A stretch of DNA of 62,886 nucleotides, filler included, from Platydemus manokwari (lineage: Eukaryota), in the NCBI GenBank assembly GCA_037951405.1. It is 6 parts of 6 records of this genome, joined end to end, with 100 filler letters (N's around TTAATTAATTAA, not from the genome) between each part and the next. Parts side by side here need not be neighbours in the genome. Positions count along the whole stretch, not along the records: positions 1 to 14,074 come from JBBMOY011543632.1; 5 more parts are not named here. One strand, written 5' to 3'. The notes beneath the pieces are model-generated. The model had not been told where the DNA came from. It saw nothing but the letters and a program-made list of their open reading frames with translations, and did no database searches. The position numbers and the translations under genes are program-made. Positions 1 to 14,074 of this stretch are shown one piece after another; within the stretch, counting starts at the first letter, position 1; each line of letters starts with the position of its first letter.

Positions 1-422
1 TTCGACTTTCTTGAATGATGAAATATTGAACTTCTTCAACTTTTTCTGATTATAACCCATCTCCAAATTTAATAAGGGTCTTATTTCATTTTCTAACATT
101 TGTAATTTTTCTACGTGTGACTTTCATCGCTATCATGTTGAAAAACTTTTCAAATTTTTGAAATCCGAAACGATTAATGATTGGAAAGAATTAATAGGAA
201 TGTCAGGATAGCACGGAAGATTCCAAGAAAATTATGCACGACCAGCAATACCGATTTATGAGTAAATAAAGGATAAGATCTAGAAATACAAACAAAGAAA
301 GAATATAAAGAATAAAGAAGGTCATTTATATTTTTAGCCAATAAGATATTTATTAAATAATTTTTATTAAAAATAATCCTTTATTCAAAGAAAATTAAAT
401 TTAATTAACTAAGTTGAATTTA

Positions 423-1799
423 ATGATGGAAGAAAATAATATTGAAGTAAAAAACGATATTGAACATTTACCAAACCCTCAACCAATGGCAACAATCATC
501 AATGTTGGAGACAAAGTAGAAGAATCAAACATTCCTGATGGAGGATGGGGTTGGGTCGTGTTGATTGCTGCTTTGGCTATCAGAATAGTATGTGGTGGAT
601 TACTTGTGACTTATGGATTATTTTTAAATCCTTTAATTTCAGAATATCAAACATCACAGACTACAATGAGTTGGTTGGCTTCATTGATGTCAGGCATAAG
701 TTTGGCATCTGCTCCAATTGCCGGTCTCTTATCAAGGAAACTGAGTAATCGAGTGATAGTATTTATTGGATCAATTTTTGCTGGTATTGCATTTGCAGCT
801 CCATATTTCTATTCACCATTGTGGTTTCTATTTCTATCTTCTATTTTGACTGGTACTGGAATGGGAATAGTAATGATGTGTACAACTGTTGTTTTGACAA
901 CATATTTCGATAAACGACTATCGATGGTTCTCGGAGTATTCACAAGTGGTACTGGTATTGCATCATTTGTAATTACACCAATATTTGGAAAGCTCATCCA
1001 TTGGTATGAATGGAGATTTTCAATGCTTATTTATGGATCATTATTTGTTGGTTGTGCAATAATCAGTTTGGTTTTCAAACCGATATCTAATAAGAAACAA
1101 AGTAACACACAAACCACTGATCAAGACAAAAAAGAAAATGTTGATGTCGAAAATAATGTCAATGAAGAATTTGAAAAAGAGAAAAATGTCGATAATTGTA
1201 AAAGAAATGAACTGTTGTTACTTTTGAAGAATCCACTTGTTTTGATATTCCTCATTGGAAACTTTCTCACCAATTTAGGACACGATACAACATTTATATT
1301 CGCTAAAGTAAGAGCGATGAATTCAGGAATCGAAGAATCAAAAGCTGGCTTATTATTGGTTTCAATTGGAATAGGAAACACATTTGGAAGATTGATATTT
1401 GGATTTTTAGGATCAAAACAGTGTATCAAAACATACATTTTATATTGTTCATCTTTGATATTGGCTGGAGGTTTCGTATTATTCAGTTCTATAGCCTTTA
1501 CTTATCCATTGATGTTAGTTTACACAATCGGGTTCGGATTATTCATTGGATCATATACAACTCTTACTCCGGTTGTATTATTGAAAATTGTAGGATTGAA
1601 CGATTTCAGTCGAGGTCTCGGGTTGACTTATTTGATACAAGCAGTTGGATTACTTTTATGTTCACCATTATCAGGGCTCATTTATGATATGACCAAAACT
1701 TTTAATTGTTCATTTATTATAAGTGGTTCTTTGATATTTGGAAGTGGTTTAATAATATTATTAGGATATTGTTCTAAGAAGTTCCGAGAAAGCCAATAA
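423..1799 (+). CDS. Monocarboxylate transporter (SLC16/MCT family, MFS), intronless
   Basis: SLC16 N-terminal signature PDGGWGWVV, YFDKRLS motif after TM4, about 12 hydrophobic segments split by a charged central loop, GRLIFG motif. The track start at 414 is TTG; first in-frame ATG is 423. AATAAA overlaps the stop codon. Confidence 0.95.
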   Translation: MMEENNIEVKNDIEHLPNPQPMATIINVGDKVEESNIPDGGWGWVVLIAALAIRIVCGGLLVTYGLFLNPLISEYQTSQTTMSWLASLMSGISLASAPIAGLLSRKLSNRVIVFIGSIFAGIAFAAPYFYSPLWFLFLSSILTGTGMGIVMMCTTVVLTTYFDKRLSMVLGVFTSGTGIASFVITPIFGKLIHWYEWRFSMLIYGSLFVGCAIISLVFKPISNKKQSNTQTTDQDKKENVDVENNVNEEFEKEKNVDNCKRNELLLLLKNPLVLIFLIGNFLTNLGHDTTFIFAKVRAMNSGIEESKAGLLLVSIGIGNTFGRLIFGFLGSKQCIKTYILYCSSLILAGGFVLFSSIAFTYPLMLVYTIGFGLFIGSYTTLTPVVLLKIVGLNDFSRGLGLTYLIQAVGLLLCSPLSGLIYDMTKTFNCSFIISGSLIFGSGLIILLGYCSKKFRESQ

Positions 1800-2420
1800 A
1801 AGAAATCAATGTATCTTTTTTTAAATAAATGTTGTTAATTTGAATTCTAGTTTTATTTTTTATTAGAAATTTAAAAATATTATTTAATAATGATTATTAT
1901 GGCAATTGATATTTAAAAAATTATGATTTTATTTATATTTAAATAATAATTATTAATAACAATTAATAATTATTATAAATAATTATAAAAAATTATTAGA
2001 AATTATTATTATAAATTAATAAGATAACAAATAAATTATTTAAATAATTATGTAATTTTTATTATATATTATATATTATAAAAATATATTATAAAATTAC
2101 AAAATAATTATTTAAAATTCGCATGTGGTTTTTATTCATTTATCTTGTATAATATTAATAATAATTAATATAATCAAATTATTTTGAAGTTAAGAATAAA
2201 GTTACTTACTTTAAGATGTTTTTATTTTATGTAAATATAATATAAAATATTCATATTTTGAAAAGATTACATAACTGTTGTTTTCATTATCAAGATTATC
2301 ATGTCTTTCCTTTTCATTTACAGGCTTCATATGACCAAAACATTTAATTATACTTGAATATTGAATAAAAAAATTGAATAATATATAAAAAATAAATTAT
2401 TAAAAATTAAAAAATATTTA

Positions 2421-2445
2421 ATATATATATATATATATATATATA
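2421..2445. repeat. (AT)n microsatellite within a very AT-rich low-complexity tract (about 1850-2520)
   Basis: Direct reading of the sequence. Confidence 0.9.
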
Positions 2446-3099
2446 ATAATTTTTATCTACATATTAAATATAATATATAAACTATATAACTAATAAATAA
2501 CAATCTTAATTAGAGAATGAAGTTTATTAGAACTACTAAACTTATTTAAATAGATATTAAAATTTTATTAGTATTCCAAAAGGATCATTAAAAAATAGAC
2601 CAAATGTACATAGAATATAACTCAAAATTTATTCAGATAATTGGCAATTATTGAACGATTAAATTGCAATTTGATACAATAAACAATAACCAAATAAAAC
2701 CATATTTAGCTTACTTCAAACAATTCAGAAACAAGCCACCAAACAAAAGCTATACTCAATATTTTGTTTAGTGTCCAAGATGAAACGTAAGTAATACATG
2801 GTATTAATTGAAAGAGATTCTTTAAAAGCTAAGAAAAACTATTGAAATATTAAGACTAATATTTTGTATTAAAAAATGTGCTTTTGAGAGCTTTTAATAT
2901 TTCTTTTCTCAAAAAAATGAGTTACGATGAAAACAAAAAATTAAAATCAATGGAGAAGAAATTTATCTAAGTAATTATTAATGAACTAGAAAAGATCATC
3001 GATAATAAAGACAATCGATTATAAAAAAAGATGATATTTCTCATTTATTAGAGAAGCGTTTAATTATGTTTGAATATTGAATAAAAAATTGAATAATTT

Positions 3100-3310
3100 A
3101 TAAAAAATCATTTATCAGTAAATAAAATAAATATCTCTGAGCTTACATCAATAGATGTTGAATGTTCTATAGCTGATGGAAGTCATGTATGTGGAAAAAG
3201 AACAAATATTATTTATAGTTTTCCAGCTAACAGTATTCCTTTTTCCCGATATTTCGTATTAGTATAATTAGATTTAAAATTACAGATCAAAATAGAAATT
3301 TAATAGAAGA
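3100..3310 (+). mobile_element. Degenerate Polinton/Maverick-like penton (minor capsid) gene fragment
   Basis: From 3121 reads NKINISELTSIDVECSIADGSHVCGKRTNIIYSFPANSIPF, then after a frameshift ISIIRFKITDQNRNLI. This resembles the pattern IxVxC..S..NG...IYSF and I.I..TDQ.G that I recall for Polinton/adintovirus pentons. Not checked by a database search. Confidence 0.6.
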
Positions 3311-3906
3311 TGTATAATTACGTTTTCAACTAAAATAAGTATTTAATTAAAAAATGGATGAAGTACCTTCGAATAAAGTTCCTTTGAGCGACGTTCCTTC
3401 GGATTTTAAAAGAATTTTTAGGAATACTTATAATTTTTATTTAAAAAATTTAAAAAATTATTCTAAATTACATATTATAATTTTCCATATCAATTTCCTT
3501 ATTAATTTCATTATTAATTTTAAGGTTTCTTCTCAATTCTTTAATCTCTTTATTACCTCTATTTTGGTGATTATTATTTGTACAATATTTGATTTAATAA
3601 TTATATATTTCGTTTATCCTTATTTGCTTATTTAGTTTTAAGTTGTTATCCTTGTTTCTATTACTGTTTCTATCAGACATAAGTCAAATACTAATATTAT
3701 TCTACTTTAACTAGCCAATACTTCTAGACTTTATCCATTTTAGAAAAAAACTTAAATATAATTTTATTTTGTAAAATATATTTTTACGAAATACATCAAG
3801 TTGTAATTGGAAAATTTTCAATGAAATGTAATGCAACATTTGAATTTATTTATTTTATCTCTTCACCATCTTTGTCATTTTCACATCCATTATCTTATTC
3901 AATAAT

Positions 3907-5634
3907 TTAGTCACAATCATTGAGGCATTCAAGTAAATGATCATTCATTCTACATTTTTTAATAACTTGTTGAAGATAATCATTAACAAAATTTTCTTCT
4001 AATTTCATTATTGATATTCCATATGATTTGCATAAATGAGGATTAAATCCATCATTCTCTATCGATCGATAAAGATAATTTTCCAAACCATTGAAAAAAT
4101 TAAACAATAAATTCAATATCCATTCACAATTCTCTTCCACGTATTCCACATCATACCGGAAACATATTTCCCATAATTCACCTTGGAAACTGTATAATGT
4201 GTCAATTAATCGATCCAAGTTTCTTTTATCATTCAATAATTCCTTCAATTTGTAGTAAGAATCTTTAATCATGTCATTCGATTTATCAGATTGAGTTAAA
4301 TTCTCGAGAAATAAATCCCAACATTCATTACTCACATCATCATATACTGTACGAAAAATCGATTGACTATTATCTTTTACAAATCTTGCAAATCCTTCTT
4401 TCAAATTTTGTAATTCAAATCGAAAACTGGTTTCAAGTGATCTCAACATCGACTTGTTTGATGGATATTTTGCTACTGTTTTCATAAAATTTTCATAAGG
4501 TGAAGACGATGAGATGATGTTTTTGATATTCTTGATATTAGTATTGATAATATTATTGAACAAATTCATCTCCATCAATGGCAATTGATTGATCAGATAT
4601 TCTGTCAGTATCTGAGATTTACCATCAATATCGATAATCATCAAATCATTATCAGTCTGATCCTTTTTCAAATTATCAAAACATGATTTTCCTTCATCTA
4701 ATGCATGATTACTATGCAGAGGACAATTACCATCAATAATTACAAACGTTTCTACACATCTTAAACATAACACGTGATCACAATGAGAAAATCTTGCCAA
4801 ATGTTTATCAATGATTGATTCATCACAAATCAAACATTTGTTCATCTCGTTTTCATCATTATTTGATTGGAGTTGTTTAAATGAATTAATGTCATCGCAT
4901 CCAAAAGAAATTATCAAAAATCGAATGAGTGATTTAATTTTCTTGATATTATTTAGATTGGATTGAGATTGTCTAACTAGTTTGGATAGAATCTGATATT
5001 GTGAACATTGTGGATTGGTTAAATATTTGAATGAAAACACTATTTCACGTTTCAATTTCTTAATCTGTTCATTGATTCTTTCCCATTTTCTGATTTTCAT
5101 GAAAAATGGATTGAAGCCATTATCAGTACATTCATCAATATAATTGTACAAAAAATTGAATATATTTTCTGAAAAGTCTTCTTCATGATTTTCATTGAAA
5201 GAATGAAATAATATCTGAACTGTTCCAATTTCTTCATCAGATATTCTGTCTCTTCTTTTAAGCCATTTGGAAATAGATTTGTGTATTTCAGTTAATATGT
5301 TTTCGTTCCAATTAATATATTTGGATAATTCTTTCAAAAATGTTGACCAATATTCAGACATCAGATCTTTAAATAAGCTTTGATTATATTTGATTATATC
5401 GTATTTGTATTGAGAAATATCTGGAATGACATCAGATAAATGTTTATTGGCAATAAGAAATGAATCATGGACATGAGTAACTGGTCTGTTATCAAGTGGA
5501 CAGAGAGGATCTTCATTAAAAATGATATTTATCGCACATACTGTACAAAAGTTATGATTGCAATCAGTAAATGTGACAGTGGTTTTGTTATCCAATTGTT
5601 CAAAGCAAATGGTACAGAGTTGTTCGTTTGTCAT
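3907..5634 (-). CDS. Intronless protein with two RING-HC-like fingers (putative E3 ubiquitin ligase)
   Basis: Uninterrupted 601-codon ORF in AT-rich DNA. RING1 is C-x2-C-x14-C-x-H-x2-C-x2-C-x11-C-x2-D (5616-5491). RING2 is C-x2-C-x14-C-x-H-x2-C-x2-C-x10-C-x2-H (4836-4714). Start is ATG 5634 (MTNEQLC) or the upstream ATG 5712. Confidence 0.88.
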   Translation of the reverse strand: MTNEQLCTICFEQLDNKTTVTFTDCNHNFCTVCAINIIFNEDPLCPLDNRPVTHVHDSFLIANKHLSDVIPDISQYKYDIIKYNQSLFKDLMSEYWSTFLKELSKYINWNENILTEIHKSISKWLKRRDRISDEEIGTVQILFHSFNENHEEDFSENIFNFLYNYIDECTDNGFNPFFMKIRKWERINEQIKKLKREIVFSFKYLTNPQCSQYQILSKLVRQSQSNLNNIKKIKSLIRFLIISFGCDDINSFKQLQSNNDENEMNKCLICDESIIDKHLARFSHCDHVLCLRCVETFVIIDGNCPLHSNHALDEGKSCFDNLKKDQTDNDLMIIDIDGKSQILTEYLINQLPLMEMNLFNNIINTNIKNIKNIISSSSPYENFMKTVAKYPSNKSMLRSLETSFRFELQNLKEGFARFVKDNSQSIFRTVYDDVSNECWDLFLENLTQSDKSNDMIKDSYYKLKELLNDKRNLDRLIDTLYSFQGELWEICFRYDVEYVEENCEWILNLLFNFFNGLENYLYRSIENDGFNPHLCKSYGISIMKLEENFVNDYLQQVIKKCRMNDHLLECLNDCD

Positions 5635-6253
5635 TTGGAAAATGAAATATTGAAAAATCAAATACAAACAAATTATATGAAAAGTGATTAGATGATGTTT
5701 TGAGGAAGACATTTAAAATCTGCGGAATAATCGAGGTTTATTACGGAAAAATCATATTGGTTGTAAGTGATGAAATAAATGGTAAAATTTACATAGACGC
5801 ATTTATTGATTCATATAACCACAGAATATATTTTCCACATTTTTGGTAAAGATAAAGACTTTTAGTGAGACTGTGTTACAGCTTATCCAACCAAAATATG
5901 ATTGAGATAAAAAGATAAAAATTATAAACTCATTATTTTTTAATTAAGAAGTTGTTAGCTGAGGAATATATTCTATTGATGAGATAAGTGGTAAATCGTC
6001 ACTGAAGAAATCTAGAGGTCTGAGTTATGAAATCACAAATTAAGTATAAATAATATGATAAAGAAATTTCACTGATATTGATCAGACTGAAATATAAAAG
6101 CACTTGTATCGAATACAATTTACCAATTTCAAAGTCATTTCATTTTATGGCTCTTGAAAGCATTTTACAATATCCGAATCATTTCATCTGTAGAGTTTCC
6201 ATGCAAATATTTTTCAGTGTCACTTTGTAGTAAATAACCTTAATTGTGTCAAA

Positions 6254-6429
6254 TAGGTAAAAAAATAATTAAAAATTTCTAAATAGATATACTTGGAAAT
6301 ATTCTAAAAAAAATCGTTTTCGTACAATTTTATAGAAATTTTAAGTTATATTTTTTCATTGACCTAAAATGAATGTGAGTGTAATTTGATATCAGTTTCA
6401 CAAAAAATAAATGTATGTTAAGATTACTT
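6254..6429 (+). repeat. Local duplication, contiguous copy
   Basis: 6254-6315 is near-identical to 7355-7416, and 6317-6429 is near-identical to 7835-7948. Confidence 0.9.
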
Positions 6430-7354
6430 TGTTAAGACATAATAATTTCATTCAATCAATTCAGAAATTTGCGAGAATTATTCCCAGTTCCTTAAACAGG
6501 TCGAATACACTAGCTTCTCTTACTAAACTGGAGTTTATTTCTCAGAATTTCATTGGTTCAAATTTATTCCATGCTCAATATTTTCTTAAAACTATCTATC
6601 ACTTTCGATTTGATTGGTGCATTTCATTTTAAAATGTTATTTGAATATTAAAATTATTTTTATTTTGTTGATATTATTGAGTTATATAAAAATAAAATTA
6701 AGGTTGAAACTTGGATTTGCGAAAATCTGGTGATACTCAGCACCTTCTTTCAAATAAAATAAATATAAGCATTTACCTTATTATCTGCTTCGACATACAA
6801 TAGATTGCCTTTATTATGTTATACTCGGAGCTGGTGTGTGTTTTCATTTGTCACATTTTAATTTAACATTCTATTTATCCAATTCCATTTAGATCTGTCG
6901 ATTTTCCGTGACTGTAAATGGTTACTCCTGATGTATGTCTATTATTATGTAGTTATGTGCTTCGTAGAATTGAAAGCTTCAATTTATTTCATCTCTGATT
7001 GACTACCTAGTATGCCTACATAGCCATGTAGAGACATGCATATGTGCAAACAGTCGAAACAAGAGTTAAAAGGTATCAAAATTGTAATTTTCTCTGATAT
7101 TCATCTTCACCCAACATATCTACATCTCCAGAAGATGTAGCCCCAAAAATGGCAATTTCATTTTCACACAACAATATTTCCATAAACAAACATAAATTTA
7201 TTGATTATTTTTATTATCGTGTGATCTATCAACATCTAGTCGTTAGTAATTAGACTTGACGGTGTAGCATTGACAAACTTTTTAAGAACATTACAACAAT
7301 CTTGTCGCAAAGAATATTCAAAATTCATATTTATTATTTGTATTTGTGCCATTG

Positions 7355-7948
7355 TAGGTAAAAAAATAATTAAAAATTTCTAAATAGATATACTTGGAAA
7401 TTTTCTAAAAAAAATCATTAATAATTTGCTTAAATCAAAAAATAAAAATTAATAGAATATTCCAGAACAAGCTGTTTAATTTAATCAATGTAATAATGTG
7501 TGTAGGAATAGTATAAAAATAGCCCATTTGTGACAATAATGGCCAGTAACTTGAGTGCTTAGTTTATGTGTGATTTTAGTAATCAATCTTTTGATTTACT
7601 TTTCATTTTGTTTTTGACTGATTCCTTCTTGAGTGATTTACTTTGTGAAAAGATTTGCTGTTGTTATTGTTGAGACTTTGAGTGTAATATTTTAGTTAAT
7701 ACAAACTTTCTGATCTAAATTGTTAATTGATAGACAAAAATTGACAAGTTAGACATTATCCCAAATAAACAATGTTCTTCAAAAAACGATGTAATAGTTC
7801 ATGCGTCTACTCCGTTTAAAAGGTATGACATTAATTTTCGTACTAATTTTATAGAAATTTTAAGTTATATTTTTTCATTGACCTAAAATGAATGTCAATG
7901 TAATTTGATATCAGTTTCACAAAAAATAAATGTATGTTAAGATTACTT
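7355..7948 (+). repeat. Local duplication, copy split by about 420 nt of extra sequence
   Basis: Both ends match 6254-6429; 7417-7834 has no counterpart there. Confidence 0.88.
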
Positions 7949-8612
7949 CGTTTAGAATAATAGCTTGAGAAATGGAAATAACAGACATATAAAAGACATT
8001 TTAAATGATGTTCCACAAATAAATAACAAATGCAGGTACTTAATAAAACTCGTAAAGGAAAGATTGAAAAGAAAATGTGGTAAAATAATCCTTTAGTGAA
8101 ATGAAGACAACAATTTAATATCACGAAATAAAATGTCTAATATAAACGATTATTACTAAATTATAAAAATTTAATTTTAGATAAAAATTGTATTTCCATT
8201 GTGCATCACAAGATTTTCACAACTGCATAGTTTCGACTACTTTATTTAAACAATTCGTTACAAATTTATTTTAATTATAAATCGACTAACCAACTCCTGA
8301 TATGTTCAATGTCATATTCATTTTGTAAAAAATAGTGTCTTTGCTTTGTCTTCTAATATAAAATTATGACATCTCACCTCCTTTCAAAAACTTTAATTCT
8401 TTAGAGATTACAAAATCTTCAAATGTTGTTAACAAATACAGATAAAGTTGCAATATTAATTAATTTTCAAATACAAACTACTAATTTAAAAATTTATCTT
8501 AAAAGCTTTTGACTTTAATCGAAAATATTGTAATCAATAAATAATTAAATCAATTTAATTTTGGTATGGTTTATCAAAAATTAAACAATCAATAATTTAT
8601 TTATCAAATGAC

Positions 8613-11600
8613 TCATGACCATAATTTCTGCCGACCACCCAATTCATATTCTCTGGTTTTCGTTGAATTTTTATCAGTGATAATCATCTTTATCTTTGGT
8701 AGATCGGATAAAGGCTTCTGATTGACTTCTGACAGCTCGGCTTTAGCAAATTTTTTATTGAGAACTAAATGGATTTTGCTACCACTTTTGAATAATTCTC
8801 GCTCATGTGCCAATGCCAATTCGTTGATTACTCGACGTTCAACCTGAACAGTTAAAATCCAATCAATCAAATGTTAACCTGAACCAATGAATGGCCAATA
8901 TTCATATTTTGTGGATTATTTAACCATATTGACAAGTAAAATAAACACCTGGAATCATCATTTTAGTTTAGTAGCTCCTTAAGAGAAGTGCCTCTGGTGA
9001 AATCTTTTGAAAATTTGAAAGAAATACAACTGACGAATCACAGCATTCGCAATCAGCAAAATCAGTGGGATACAAAGAGGGATATTTATATTGGAAAATT
9101 GATGTTTTGTCAGTAACAACAAAATGAGAATTGCTTATTGGAGATTAATTATCAATTTTGACAAATATAAAAAGAATTTAATTGGACACAGTAATTATCA
9201 GATAGATCCGATAATATCAATTAACTAAATATGACAAGATAAAGCTGAAAGTGGCGGAAGTCAGGCCGGCCAATATTGGTTTTGTCAAATTGGAGAATCT
9301 AATAAACAGATATGAAGGACTGTACAAGCTTATTTTGTAAAAAAGTAAATGGGAGTCACAATGAATACGCTACTATGCAAACTATTTAAATTTATTGTTT
9401 TCCAATTTGCTTTCATTGCATCAAGAATTAGCTAAAAATATTCACGACATTGTTGTGAGCATTATAAAGGGAATTAAATTTTTTAAGATTTAATTTTGAA
9501 TAAAATTATATGAATTTATTGAAATAATCGTATTTGAAAACATAATTCGATATCGAGACTTTTCCGTTCGTCTTGGATGCATGTTTTATAAAATAGTAGC
9601 GGCTTAAATGGCGATCACGTATCTGGATTCGATTATGAGAAGATCAATAACTGATAATTACGATAAAGAAGAAATATGTTGAGACTATATAGAGAATCTA
9701 TAAATAAGATGTAAAGAAGGCATAAGGGAAATAGAAAGTTTAAAATTTTTTATGTAAAGCATTCGATACGATTCCAATTAAAAAAAAAGGGGGGAGTGTA
9801 AGCTAAAAATTAAAAATTTAAAGATTGTTAATATAATTGGATTTAAATAATTCGGTGTCGTGACTTTTCAGTTCGTTTTGAATGCGTGTTTTATAAAATA
9901 GTACCGATTTGCAATTGTATTATTATTGATAGTTTTGAGCTCCGTTTTTATTTGTCGTTAAATTTGAATTGAACATATTTTGTACTGCTAATTTTCCTTT
10001 CTTATCTTCCAGATTAATGGAACTTATGATCGAAGGATCTTCAGTAATTATATAGAAGAATTCTCACCAATACACATTCATTAATAATCAATTATTTTAA
10101 CATCAATGACCGGATGGAGAAAATTTCATCAGGCTTTGTCAAAACAAATAATTTTCAACAAGACTTTTCAAGAAAAAATATCAGAATGCCAACCATACTA
10201 ATACTAACCCCGGATAGTCGGTAGAGTATCGGGCTTTTAATCTGAGGGTCCAGGGTTCGAGTCCTTGTTCGGGCGATATTTTTATCGATTCAATCTTAAA
10301 GGATTCAAACCAAATTCTCAATACCACCAAACGAATAAATTCCATAATTCAACTTTCAATCGATTATTACAAATTTTATCATAAAAAACACATTAAAATA
10401 TACACACATTTAACAAGAACCAAAAATATTGATTTTGATAAAATATTTTTGCTTATTTAATTTTGAAAAATTATCGTGGAAAAATGTTTTGATTAATTTT
10501 CTCATTGAAAAATAATCATTGGGTGTTGCTGATGAAGTAGGTAGGCTTTTTCTGTGCAACAACGGAACGAATGGAAATATAAAATCAATACAATAAACTA
10601 TTACTGCCTGCATATTTTTCGAAATAAATATAAATAATAATTTTTCAACTGTAAAATGATTTATTAATTCCAATATAAGTCATCTTTGTTATTGATTTTA
10701 ATTCCATCATAAATAAATGGATCCAGTATCGATTATAATCGCTCAATCCCACATTAACCACAAACAACACAAATTTCGATTACAATAACAACATTCAGAA
10801 TAGCTAAATATGGAGCGATTTTCATTGGATATTGGACGACATCCAATCAATATCTTTTATTTCAATAAATGCACACGCACACAATGCACAACCAAATATC
10901 AAGCCTATATGTATGGATTTTTCGCGAAAAACTTCATTATTCAAATCGATACCAGAGTAGATATAAGAGTCAACGCTACAATCGAAACATTAAATTACCT
11001 CATATTTGATAGAACGGGCACCGTAATAAATATTGTAACCATCGGCCAAGTAATCCACAACAGAATTATCCCATGTCAATTCAATGCCATGCTTGTCTAA
11101 TGCTCGTCCTTTCCAAATTTCCAACTCCACCTTGACCAGTCGTGCCAGTTCAGAATCGGAAAACGGTAGAAAGTAGACCATTTCATTGATTCGGCCGAGA
11201 AATTCATCGCGCAGAAAATGTCTCTAACGATGAATACTATTATTCGACGATCTTTCTCTAAATGCACAAATCAAACCTTTAAGATAGGTCTCATTATTTT
11301 CTCTTTGAATTCTCTTCCGATTTCAACATTATCCGAGCCTGAAACAGGTATAAAATTCAATGAAATATCATTTTCTCTGACACTCCTTTACCAGATTTGT
11401 TGGCAATTCTCAATTTTTGGGCATGATTCGCGATCTCTTCACTGGCCAAATTGGATGTCATAATAAATATGGCCTTTTTACATTCAATTGTCTTGCCTTG
11501 TCCATCGGTCATTCGGCCCTATAATGGGCATTTTATAAACATTGCAGGTCAACTGTCCCATAACATACCTCATCAAACAATTGTAATAGAATCGTCAAAA

Positions 11601-13817
11601 CATCAGGATGGGCTTTTTCAACTTCATCAAACAAAACAACAGCTTGGGGACAATTGGTTAAAGCTTTGGTCAATTGTCCACCTTGCTCATGCCCAACATA
11701 GCCGGGTGGTGATCCAATAAATTTTGCCACCTATAATTGGTTCGGATATACCACAATGAAAATTTCCACATTAATTGATAACGATTTGAATATATAAAAT
11801 CAAGCTTACTGGGTATATTAACCGATTTAGAAAAAATAATAAAAATCAATTATGAACTAAACACAAACAATGAGACATCTTAGATTCATCAATAAATAGG
11901 AAATGTTTTGATATCAGTTATCATCAGTTGAAATAAAATTGTCAATTTATTTGTCATTTACTATTGTAAATTGTGATCTATCAATCCAACCAATCAAATT
12001 TAACAAAATTAGATAAATCGATATTAAAATTTAGAGAGAAATTTTAAAATGATTTCGTGAAATTAACCTGAATAAATGATCGTCAAATGGCAAAAACAGA
12101 TTTATATTTGGTGAGTGAAATAGAAACGGTTACATGAAATTATTGATTTGTGAAGTGAGTGTCAGAAGATTTATAAAAATACAAATTTGGTTCATTTTTC
12201 TAGGCTAGATTTTGACCTGCAGGGGGTATTTATGAGATAATCGATCATAATAGTCGAATTTTATCCATTATTTTTACAATATTTAACACGATGTTATATC
12301 AATCAATAAACGATGATGAAACTAGGAAGTAACCTCGTGTTTTTGTTGATATTCGGACATATCTATTCGAATGAAACCCTTTTTCAAGTCGTTTTTGTGC
12401 AAATAATTGGCAATTTGCTTAGCAGTCTCCGTTTTACCGATTCCAGAAGATCCAAGAAACAAAAATACCAACGGATGTTCATCGTCAGTCCAACCGTTTT
12501 CCTTTCGTCGAATAGCTAAAATTAAGATCTAAAAACAACCAAAACCTAAATCAACTGAAAAATCTTTTACTGGCTGCAACAAGATCTATTGCGGCTTCTT
12601 GGCCGACGATATGTTTTCGCAATCGGTGTTCCAATGGAAATTTACGTCTTTCTTCGATTTCTTTTTCTCTTTTACTTTTCAAAAACTAAAAATATCAAAT
12701 TATGATTTTTAAATAACCAATCTAATTATTGTTATTATTATTTATTTGTATAATTATTTGAGAAACAGTTTCTCTCTGTATTCGTGACATTATGCAAATA
12801 AATATATCCCATAAATTAGCCTTACTTGTTCTTCCTTTGAAAGTAACAATTTCCTAATGGAATCCGATTTTGCATATTGTATAGGTGTATATCCTTTATC
12901 ATTTTCCATTGTTGGATCAGCATCTAATAGATATATTCCATTGTGAAACATATTAATGATAAGATTTACTATTATTCAACAATAATGCTGTCATGTCATA
13001 ATCGTCCAACAATACTGAATAATGGAGAGCTGTGCAGCCTTGAAAATTTGCCCGCGTATTAAATTCTGCACTGAACTCATTTTTTCGTATATAGTCGACT
13101 AAATAATTCAATGAAAATGTTGATCAATCATTTATATAAATATGTGATTATATCACATATAATCGTATTAAATCACAGTAAAACATTATATAAAGATTAA
13201 AATTATATTTATATAATTCGAAATGAATTTTTAATAATTATTAAATTTTACTTTATCAGAAAAATTTAATTAAAATTCTTTTTACTTTCTAAAGCATTCG
13301 TTTTCAAAATTTTTGACATTTCTAATGCACCACTATAATCATCCTTTTCGTTTACATTTGCACCTTTACCGATTAAGAATTTCGCACATCTATAATTAAA
13401 ATAACGAAAGTTACATTAATGCAATATTTTAATTTACTTTAACTGTCGATTAGCAACAGCAGTCATTAATAATGACCAGCCTAATGAATGCCGCTTTTCT
13501 AAATCTTCTTTCTGAAATCCTCTGATAAAGAAATTATATTTAATTCAATTAAATGTTAAATACTTTGATAGGTTATTTAAATCACCTATTCTAGCATAGT
13601 ACAAAACATCACCTAAATTCCATAATTAAACAACAATTAAAATAAAAATACAATACTTCGCAAATTTAGAATATTAGCTGATAATAAAAGAAGCGGTGAT
13701 GATTTAAAAAATATTTCACAGAAATTAGAACATTTATATTTGAATGGATAATTATATATCAATTTTTTTTACATTACAGCACAAACGTATATTAATAAAT
13801 ATTAAAACACTATTCAT
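8613..13817 (-). CDS. CLPB: Mitochondrial disaggregase CLPB/Skd3 (ankyrin repeats + single AAA+ domain), 13 exons
   Basis: Hand-built exons with GT-AG introns: 13817-13657 (tentative, needs a 1-nt correction), 13612-13564, 13521-13438, 13389-13286, 13098-12970, 12923-12826, 12685-12571, 12515-12334, 11730-11569, 11518-11392, 11338-11277, 11223-10999, 8843-8613. Motifs: [46 protein letters not shown], Walker A GSSGIGKT, pore loop GSPPGYVG, Walker [27 protein letters not shown]. These closely follow metazoan CLPB/Skd3. Confidence 0.96.
9556..9608 (+). repeat. Short dispersed repeat (other copies at about 9860-9905 + and about 38440-38500 -)
   Basis: GACTTTTC.GTTCGT.TTG.ATGC.TGTTTTATAAAATAGTA occurs twice in the CLPB intron; the reverse complement CGCTACTATTTTAAAAA...AAACGAACTGAAAAGTCACGACA occurs near 38445. 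Confidence 0.75.
10208..10275 (+). pseudogene. tRNA-Lys(TTT) pseudogene
   Basis: Matches canonical metazoan tRNA-Lys-TTT (CCCGGATAG..TCGGTAGAG..CTTTTAATCTGAGGGTCCAGGGTTC..TGTTCGGGCG) but lacks 5 nt (CTCAG) of the D-stem/A-box and has substitutions in the stems. 68 nt long, followed by a T5 Pol III terminator at 10279-10283. Confidence 0.9.
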
Positions 13818-14074
13818 CGGACATATTATAAAGTATTGTCACGCACTCTCCATCCCTACTCAACACCGTAAGACATACAGGGATTGAGAAAAGTAGTTAG
13901 GAAGCAGAAGCTTAAGGATTGGTCTAAAATGAACACGAAACAGGTTTTTAAATTTGAAAACGGCATTTGTATGACACAGACTGGATACTTTCTTAAATAC
14001 TTGAATTATTATATAAGCTAATTATTCTATAGTATTTATCAGTAAAATTATTTTACTAATAACTGTTTATTGTT

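Follow-up and report, generated by a model that had tools for sequence, protein, structure and literature searches.

A large family of intronless genes with a fixed double-RING architecture, putatively encoding E3 ubiquitin ligases, in Platydemus manokwari

The window analysed here is a stretch of 62,886 nucleotides (nt), filler included, joined from six parts of the Platydemus manokwari assembly GCA_037951405.1. Its first part (positions 1-14,074, from JBBMOY011543632.1) carries on the minus strand a gene for a protein with two RING fingers, each followed by a helical region. We consider it likely, though by no means certain, that this single-exon gene encodes a cytoplasmic RING-type E3 ubiquitin ligase of about 575 amino acids (aa), in which conserved fingers are combined with rapidly diverging helical surfaces that would probably bind substrates. 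A first-pass annotation, made from the DNA sequence by a model, had presented the gene as a single novelty. It turned out to be one of at least about 78 loci in its own genome, with relatives in other organisms.

The annotation had placed an open frame at 3907-5712, and the minus strand is indeed open there for 601 uninterrupted codons, ending with a TAA stop. The frame lies in DNA of 27% guanine plus cytosine (GC), with 25-30% around the gene; at such a composition about one in twelve random codons (~8%) is a stop, so that a frame of 600 codons is not expected by chance. The true translation start is probably methionine 27 (nt 5634), because in all 27 aligned paralogs the first cysteine is preceded by only 5-10 residues. 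The probable coding sequence (3907-5634, minus strand) is a single exon for 575 aa plus stop, and the family profile matches positions 3952-5634. An AATAAA follows about 60 nt beyond the stop. The 26 in-frame codons upstream of this methionine (5635-5712, minus strand) are T-rich, specify a hydrophobic stretch and have a counterpart in no paralog. They probably represent a 5' leader in T-rich DNA; alternatively, they may form an N-terminal membrane anchor of a membrane-tethered isoform peculiar to this copy, and if translated they would resemble a signal anchor.

Two RING fingers, each with a 14-residue first loop and ending in CPLD and CPLH respectively, had been claimed, and all of these features were confirmed in the translation. 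RING1 (5491-5616, minus strand) is of the C3HC3D type with the ligands C7, C10, C25, H27, C30, C33, C45 and D48 (numbering of the 575-aa protein) in the spacing C-x2-C-x14-C-x-H-x2-C-x2-C-x11-C-P-L-D. RING2 (4714-4836, minus strand) is C3HC3H in this copy, with C267, C270, C285, H287, C290, C293, C304 and H307 in the spacing C-x2-C-x14-C-x-H-x2-C-x2-C-x10-C-P-L-H. Both fingers follow the ligand rule of RING-type E3 enzymes, C-x2-C-x(9-39)-C-x(1-3)-H-x(2-3)-C-x2-C-x(4-48)-C-x2-C/D/H. A Pfam scan of the protein detected RING models (zf-RING_2, E value 6.7e-10; zf-C3HC4, E value 1.2e-6) in two stretches, RING1 and RING2, and gave no credible match elsewhere in the protein.

Conservation of the ligand columns was counted in an alignment of 28 paralogs and in an alignment of 59 sequences that combines members from this genome with external ones. 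The RING1 ligands are invariant in 28 of 28 paralogs and present in 58-59 of the 59 sequences (third cysteine and aspartate 58 each). Seven ligands of RING2 are invariant or nearly so (H287 in 58 of 59); at the eighth position the 59 sequences have D (28), H (19), C (3), E (3) or other residues (6), and 11 have a cysteine at the next position. These columns and the Pfam matches uphold the view that Asp and His serve as non-canonical last ligands in two genuine RING fingers. The fingers are unusual but not new, since C3HC3D is a recognised minor RING class, found in 5 of 139 RING domains in Drosophila and represented structurally by the TRAF6 RING structure 3HCT (PMC3166285).

Several further positions are kept across the 59 sequences. 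The C-x-[I/V]-C position is Ile or Val in 55 sequences for RING1 and in 54 for RING2, with Ile in both fingers here, and the proline that follows Cys7, the seventh ligand, occurs in 57 and 59 sequences respectively and in both fingers of this copy. The linchpin site after the RING1 aspartate is Arg or Lys in 41 of 59; the RING2 family consensus has no basic linchpin residue and most often Gly. Across the family RING1 thus carries the fuller set of activity-associated residues. By sequence, the solved RINGs closest to RING1 are RING1B (best match), LNX, RNF4 and TRAF6, and those closest to RING2 are TRIM32 and RNF38. An AlphaFold2 (AF2) model is confident over both fingers and predicts the beta-beta-alpha RING fold, with structural superposition carried out for RING1: it superposes on MEX-3C with a root-mean-square deviation of 2.0-2.8 Å over 53-54 residues, and further matches were RING1B, TRAF5/6 and TRIM RINGs.

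The AF2 model, built with the 28-row paralog alignment, has a mean predicted local distance difference test score (pLDDT) of 80.9 and a predicted template modelling score (pTM) of 0.84. It places RING1, a bundle of long helices, RING2, a spacer, a beta-hairpin and about nine helices in this order, and so predicts as helical both of the long regions after the RINGs for which the annotation had proposed this. Helical module 1 (4870-5463; aa 58-255) is the bundle of long helices; its last helix, together with the linker into RING2, is the best conserved part of the protein outside the RINGs. The spacer after RING2 (4648-4710; aa 309-329) has a pLDDT below 50 and varies in length in the alignment. 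Helical module 2 (3919-4638; aa 333-572), the most divergent part of the family, consists of the short beta-hairpin and the nine or so helices; all three features lie on the minus strand. In structural comparison module 1 resembled four-helix bundles and module 2 spectrin/GAT-like three-helix bundles. Searches of Pfam, PDB and BFVD matched only the RINGs and no known fold or family beyond them, which agrees with the claim that the remaining parts contain no recognised domain; with Foldseek, no viral fold match beyond the RINGs was found in BFVD. ESM Atlas gave only giant-virus RING clusters, at 0.86-0.89 and thus below the trust threshold; we rejected them as effects of the RINGs and of AT-rich composition.

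A protein search of the P. manokwari genome (911 Mb in about 2 million contigs) yielded 74 matches, and the family profile at least 81 at E≤1e-10, corresponding to about 78 loci; this family size is a lower bound, 79 of 379 candidates having been scored. The members are dispersed and all intronless, and most are uninterrupted frames of 490-600 aa. Among the 28 intact copies that were extracted and aligned, this gene included, identity to the present protein is 17-34%, and no two paralogs share more than about 40% identity save for one pair at 72%. Throughout the family the architecture is fixed, each RING being followed by a helical bundle in the sequence seen here. Mean pairwise identity in the 28 paralogs is 38% for RING1 and 43% for RING2, 26% for the linker into RING2, 17% for helical module 1 and 15% for helical module 2. 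The closest pair, with a dS of 0.34, has a ratio of non-synonymous to synonymous substitution rates (dN/dS) of 0.46; the five other pairs computed range from 0.28 to 0.56 (dS 1.1-1.8). Apart from short repeats, the paralogs have no flanking sequence in common; the genes are therefore not cargo of a common mobile element, and transposon cargo was ruled out on this ground. One copy, C1174211:4543-6120, is a clear pseudogene with at least eight in-frame stops (TGA and TAA); the paralogs are mostly intact.

Word-index protein searches revealed no relatives, whether the query was the protein alone or the 28-row alignment. These blanks reflect low sensitivity, because 1.84 billion representative proteins, searched exhaustively by profile, did yield relatives, with 568 matches at E≤1e-3, 64 at E≤1e-10 and 34 at E≤1e-30. 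The matches at E≤1e-30 are mostly full length, the best spanning 500-660 aa. Ten external relatives were looked up, and all lie on ENA or Logan contigs of 1.8-3.7 kb. The best external match (P0001), the one compared in this way, shares no more than 46% identity with any copy in the P. manokwari genome and therefore belongs to another organism. In a FastTree phylogeny of the 59 sequences, external and own members interleave: the supported branches require no fewer than 11 label changes, and own-external pairs such as L031/P0009, L017/P0003 and L023/P0015 have 99-100% support. This interleaving implies that several subfamilies arose before these organisms diverged. Among the matches that clearly stand outside the family, the strongest cover only the RING and are of mixed types (RBR-like, RING-PHD, Deltex). 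The family is large, old and fast-diverging and probably restricted to flatworms, in support of the annotation's suggestion that the gene is lineage-specific.

The same annotation had explained the protein by internal tandem duplication of a RING plus helical module with a shared GFNP motif, which would give a single-chain pseudo-dimeric E3 with its RINGs paired like the protomers of dimeric RING proteins. We regard this as unlikely. GFNP is encoded at both places named, 5118-5107 and 4050-4039 on the minus strand, and falls in the model into the loops between helices H156-168 and H176-195 (site 1) and between helices H504-519 and H532-549 (site 2). In the close clade of eight paralogs from this genome, however, GFNP at site 2 is confined to this gene, and four of the eight have NPFF at site 1; a shared GFNP domain thus found no confirmation. 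The fingers themselves are alike: both have a 14-residue first loop, a 10-11-residue second loop and a C-P-[LF]-[DH] ending. Profile-profile comparison of one half with the other gave an E value of 3.5e-10 with 28 sequences, the alignment drifting to column 145, and of 2e-13 with 59 sequences, where columns 2-74 aligned with columns 4-77, that is, the RING and about 25 residues beyond it only. In the present protein taken alone the halves also align outside the RINGs (blastp E value 2e-5 without composition correction), and its two helical parts reach a Smith-Waterman score of 74, equalled by 1 of 300 shuffles (nominal z score 4.4). This similarity was not replicated in the 11 other paralogs tested, with z scores of -1.4 to 2.6. 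Helical-only profiles compared with hhalign scored 13.1-15.0 (E values 0.09-0.25) against 12.6-13.3 for reversed controls and 5-9 for column shuffles; the individual comparisons were 14.9 against 13.3 reversed with 59 sequences and 13.1 against 12.6 with 28, and in the profile of the gene's own clade the reversed control even exceeded the forward score (20.6 against 19.3).

Duplication of the whole module is therefore not borne out, the self-comparison being significant only over the RING and about 25 residues and the helical parts scoring like their reversed controls; the two modules also resemble different kinds of bundle. A RING1 profile scores the RING2 sequences of the family at a median of 36.8 bits, below unrelated database RINGs, which reach up to 54 bits among the rows that are clearly not family fragments, a comparison in which selection out of billions of sequences introduces a bias and which includes database rows that are likely to be fragments of the family. 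The two RINGs are thus not demonstrably each other's closest relatives. For the pseudo-dimer, the pTM of the model suggests a fixed overall arrangement. Taken together, an ancient duplication would agree with the similar loop lengths and endings of the fingers. The data lend no support to a GFNP domain or to a common descent of the helical modules.

In the E3 ligase reading that we prefer, RING1 would recruit the ubiquitin-charged E2, and RING2 may serve as a second or supporting RING, like the inactive partner in heterodimeric RING pairs. The variable helical bundles would bind substrates, so that each paralog would target something different. Several observations weigh against this reading. 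No RNA run carrying the locus was found among the sequencing runs searched, and the sole run covering it is genomic, with an even depth of about 20 over 2400-7400. This copy deviates from the family consensus at two positions that may matter: it has Asn, and not Arg or Lys, after D48, and Val at the position Lys288, which is K in 55 of the 59 sequences. With a dN/dS of about 0.5, constraint is no more than moderate. The roles of RING1, RING2 and the helical modules are predicted from sequence patterns alone.

The missing basic linchpin, after RING1 in this copy and in the RING2 consensus, would also fit fingers that are structural or protein-interaction zinc modules of a scaffold without ligase activity of its own; many RING proteins are inactive partners, among them BARD1, BMI1 and MDMX. 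We hold this to be quite improbable, as the E2-contacting Ile/Val and the Cys7 proline are kept in both fingers across the 59 sequences, Arg or Lys follows RING1 in 41 of them, and the closest solved RINGs are active E3 enzymes. Intronless, multicopy genes, a few of them broken by several stops as in C1174211, and a high-copy repeat about 500 bp downstream could furthermore point to a decaying or selfish multicopy frame (a retrocopy, or derived from a transposon or virus) without a function for the host. Copies only 17-40% identical that are nevertheless mostly uninterrupted over more than 500 codons in DNA of 27% GC, a dN/dS below 1 and orthologous subfamilies kept across organisms all argue against such an element, as do paralog flanks without a common sequence and the lack of viral structural matches beyond the RINGs in BFVD, and we consider it very improbable.

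Among known RING systems, the protein recalls TRAF6 in the Asp that acts as eighth zinc ligand in the C-P-x-D ending of RING1, and TRAF6 RINGs were among both its sequence and its structure matches. It differs from TRAF proteins in that TRAF zinc fingers and MATH/TRAF-C were not found (Pfam, E≤10), a second RING lies in the middle of the chain and the remainder consists of helical bundles without a recognised family. TRIM proteins combine a RING, a B-box, a coiled coil and a variable C-terminal domain and have undergone lineage-specific expansions. The double-RING family resembles them in outline, with an N-terminal RING that is catalytic there and predicted to be so here, a long helical region, a fast-diverging C-terminal part and many paralogs, and the RINGs of TRIM32, TRIM21 and TRIM69 were among the matches of this protein. 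In contrast to TRIM proteins, B-box and PRY/SPRY were not found by Pfam, no Cys/His cluster follows RING1, a second true RING is present instead, and the genes are intronless. With RBR (RING1-IBR-RING2) enzymes the protein shares two RING-like fingers on one chain, but about 200 helical residues stand where the IBR would be, and its RING2 has canonical C3HC3-type ligands and Pfam RING matches and is no Rcat. The annotation's exclusion of an RBR thus holds; Pfam IBR_1 matched only inside RING1 (E value 3, 8.2 bits), and the region between the RINGs is helical in the model. Heterodimeric RING pairs (RING1B-BMI1, BRCA1-BARD1) and multi-RING ligases such as Mind bomb likewise bring together an active and a possibly supporting RING. 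Here, in contrast to the heterodimeric pairs, both RINGs sit on one polypeptide with a helical bundle between them, and contact between the RINGs is not implied.

A survey of planarian RING/U-box genes comprised 393 transcripts, of which 376 were classified by homology to human RING/U-box genes and 17 had no human homolog, and it describes no family like the double-RING one (PMC8807557). Full-text literature searches likewise returned no described planarian double-RING family. Judging from these searches and from Pfam, PDB and BFVD, an architecture of two RINGs and two helical bundles in about 80 or more divergent intronless genes is apparently undescribed. RING ligases themselves are ordinary; the apparently new part is the amplification of a fixed double-RING architecture. 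If expressed, the family would be a candidate for a substrate-targeting repertoire specific to this lineage, whose animals serve in research on stem cells, regeneration and innate immunity, and would also supply two helical domains without recognised relatives. The size of the family, the scattering of its intronless members, their moderate constraint and a conserved core combined with variable surfaces recall, as a speculation, E3 families engaged in immunity or genetic conflict. Extended further, about 100 or more flatworm-restricted, intronless double-RING ligases might form a system for restriction or immunity within cells, or for genome conflict, with a logic comparable to that of the expanded vertebrate TRIM families in a different, new architecture. 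We put this forward tentatively and judge it to be rather unlikely.

In the vicinity of the gene, an uninterrupted plus-strand frame of 461 codons at 414-1799, apparently a single exon over this span, encodes an SLC16A-type monocarboxylate transporter (Pfam MFS_1, E value 5.5e-40). Its best named relatives, Schmidtea mediterranea slc16a-20 and slc16a-9, share 50-51% identity with it, the next named matches (insects) 26-33% and a Logan protein 70%. This one neighbouring gene, together with base composition, points to a planarian-type flatworm other than S. mediterranea as the host. The repeat about 500 bp past the stop codon of the double-RING gene (3068-3401) is of very high copy number, with a summed contig depth of 23,842 in run X1 compared to about 20 in the flanks, many loose ends and variant letters at 3135 and 3149. 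Just past the stop codon, positions 3715-3873 are identical to a 159-nt contig of depth 2.7 in run X2, which is labelled as a different organism and contains almost none of the remaining locus; this contig could stem from carry-over between samples or from a conserved or repeated element. A borderline Rfam match to a transfer RNA (tRNA) at 10208-10275 on the plus strand (29.4 bits at a gathering score of 29, E value 0.01), where ARAGORN reported no tRNA, probably reflects chance or a relic derived from a tRNA. Positions 10400-11800, at 34-35% the GC-richest part of the window, are single-copy in the genome and contain three consecutive plus-strand open reading frames of 81-96 aa. The region gave no Pfam match and may consist of exons of an unrecognised gene.
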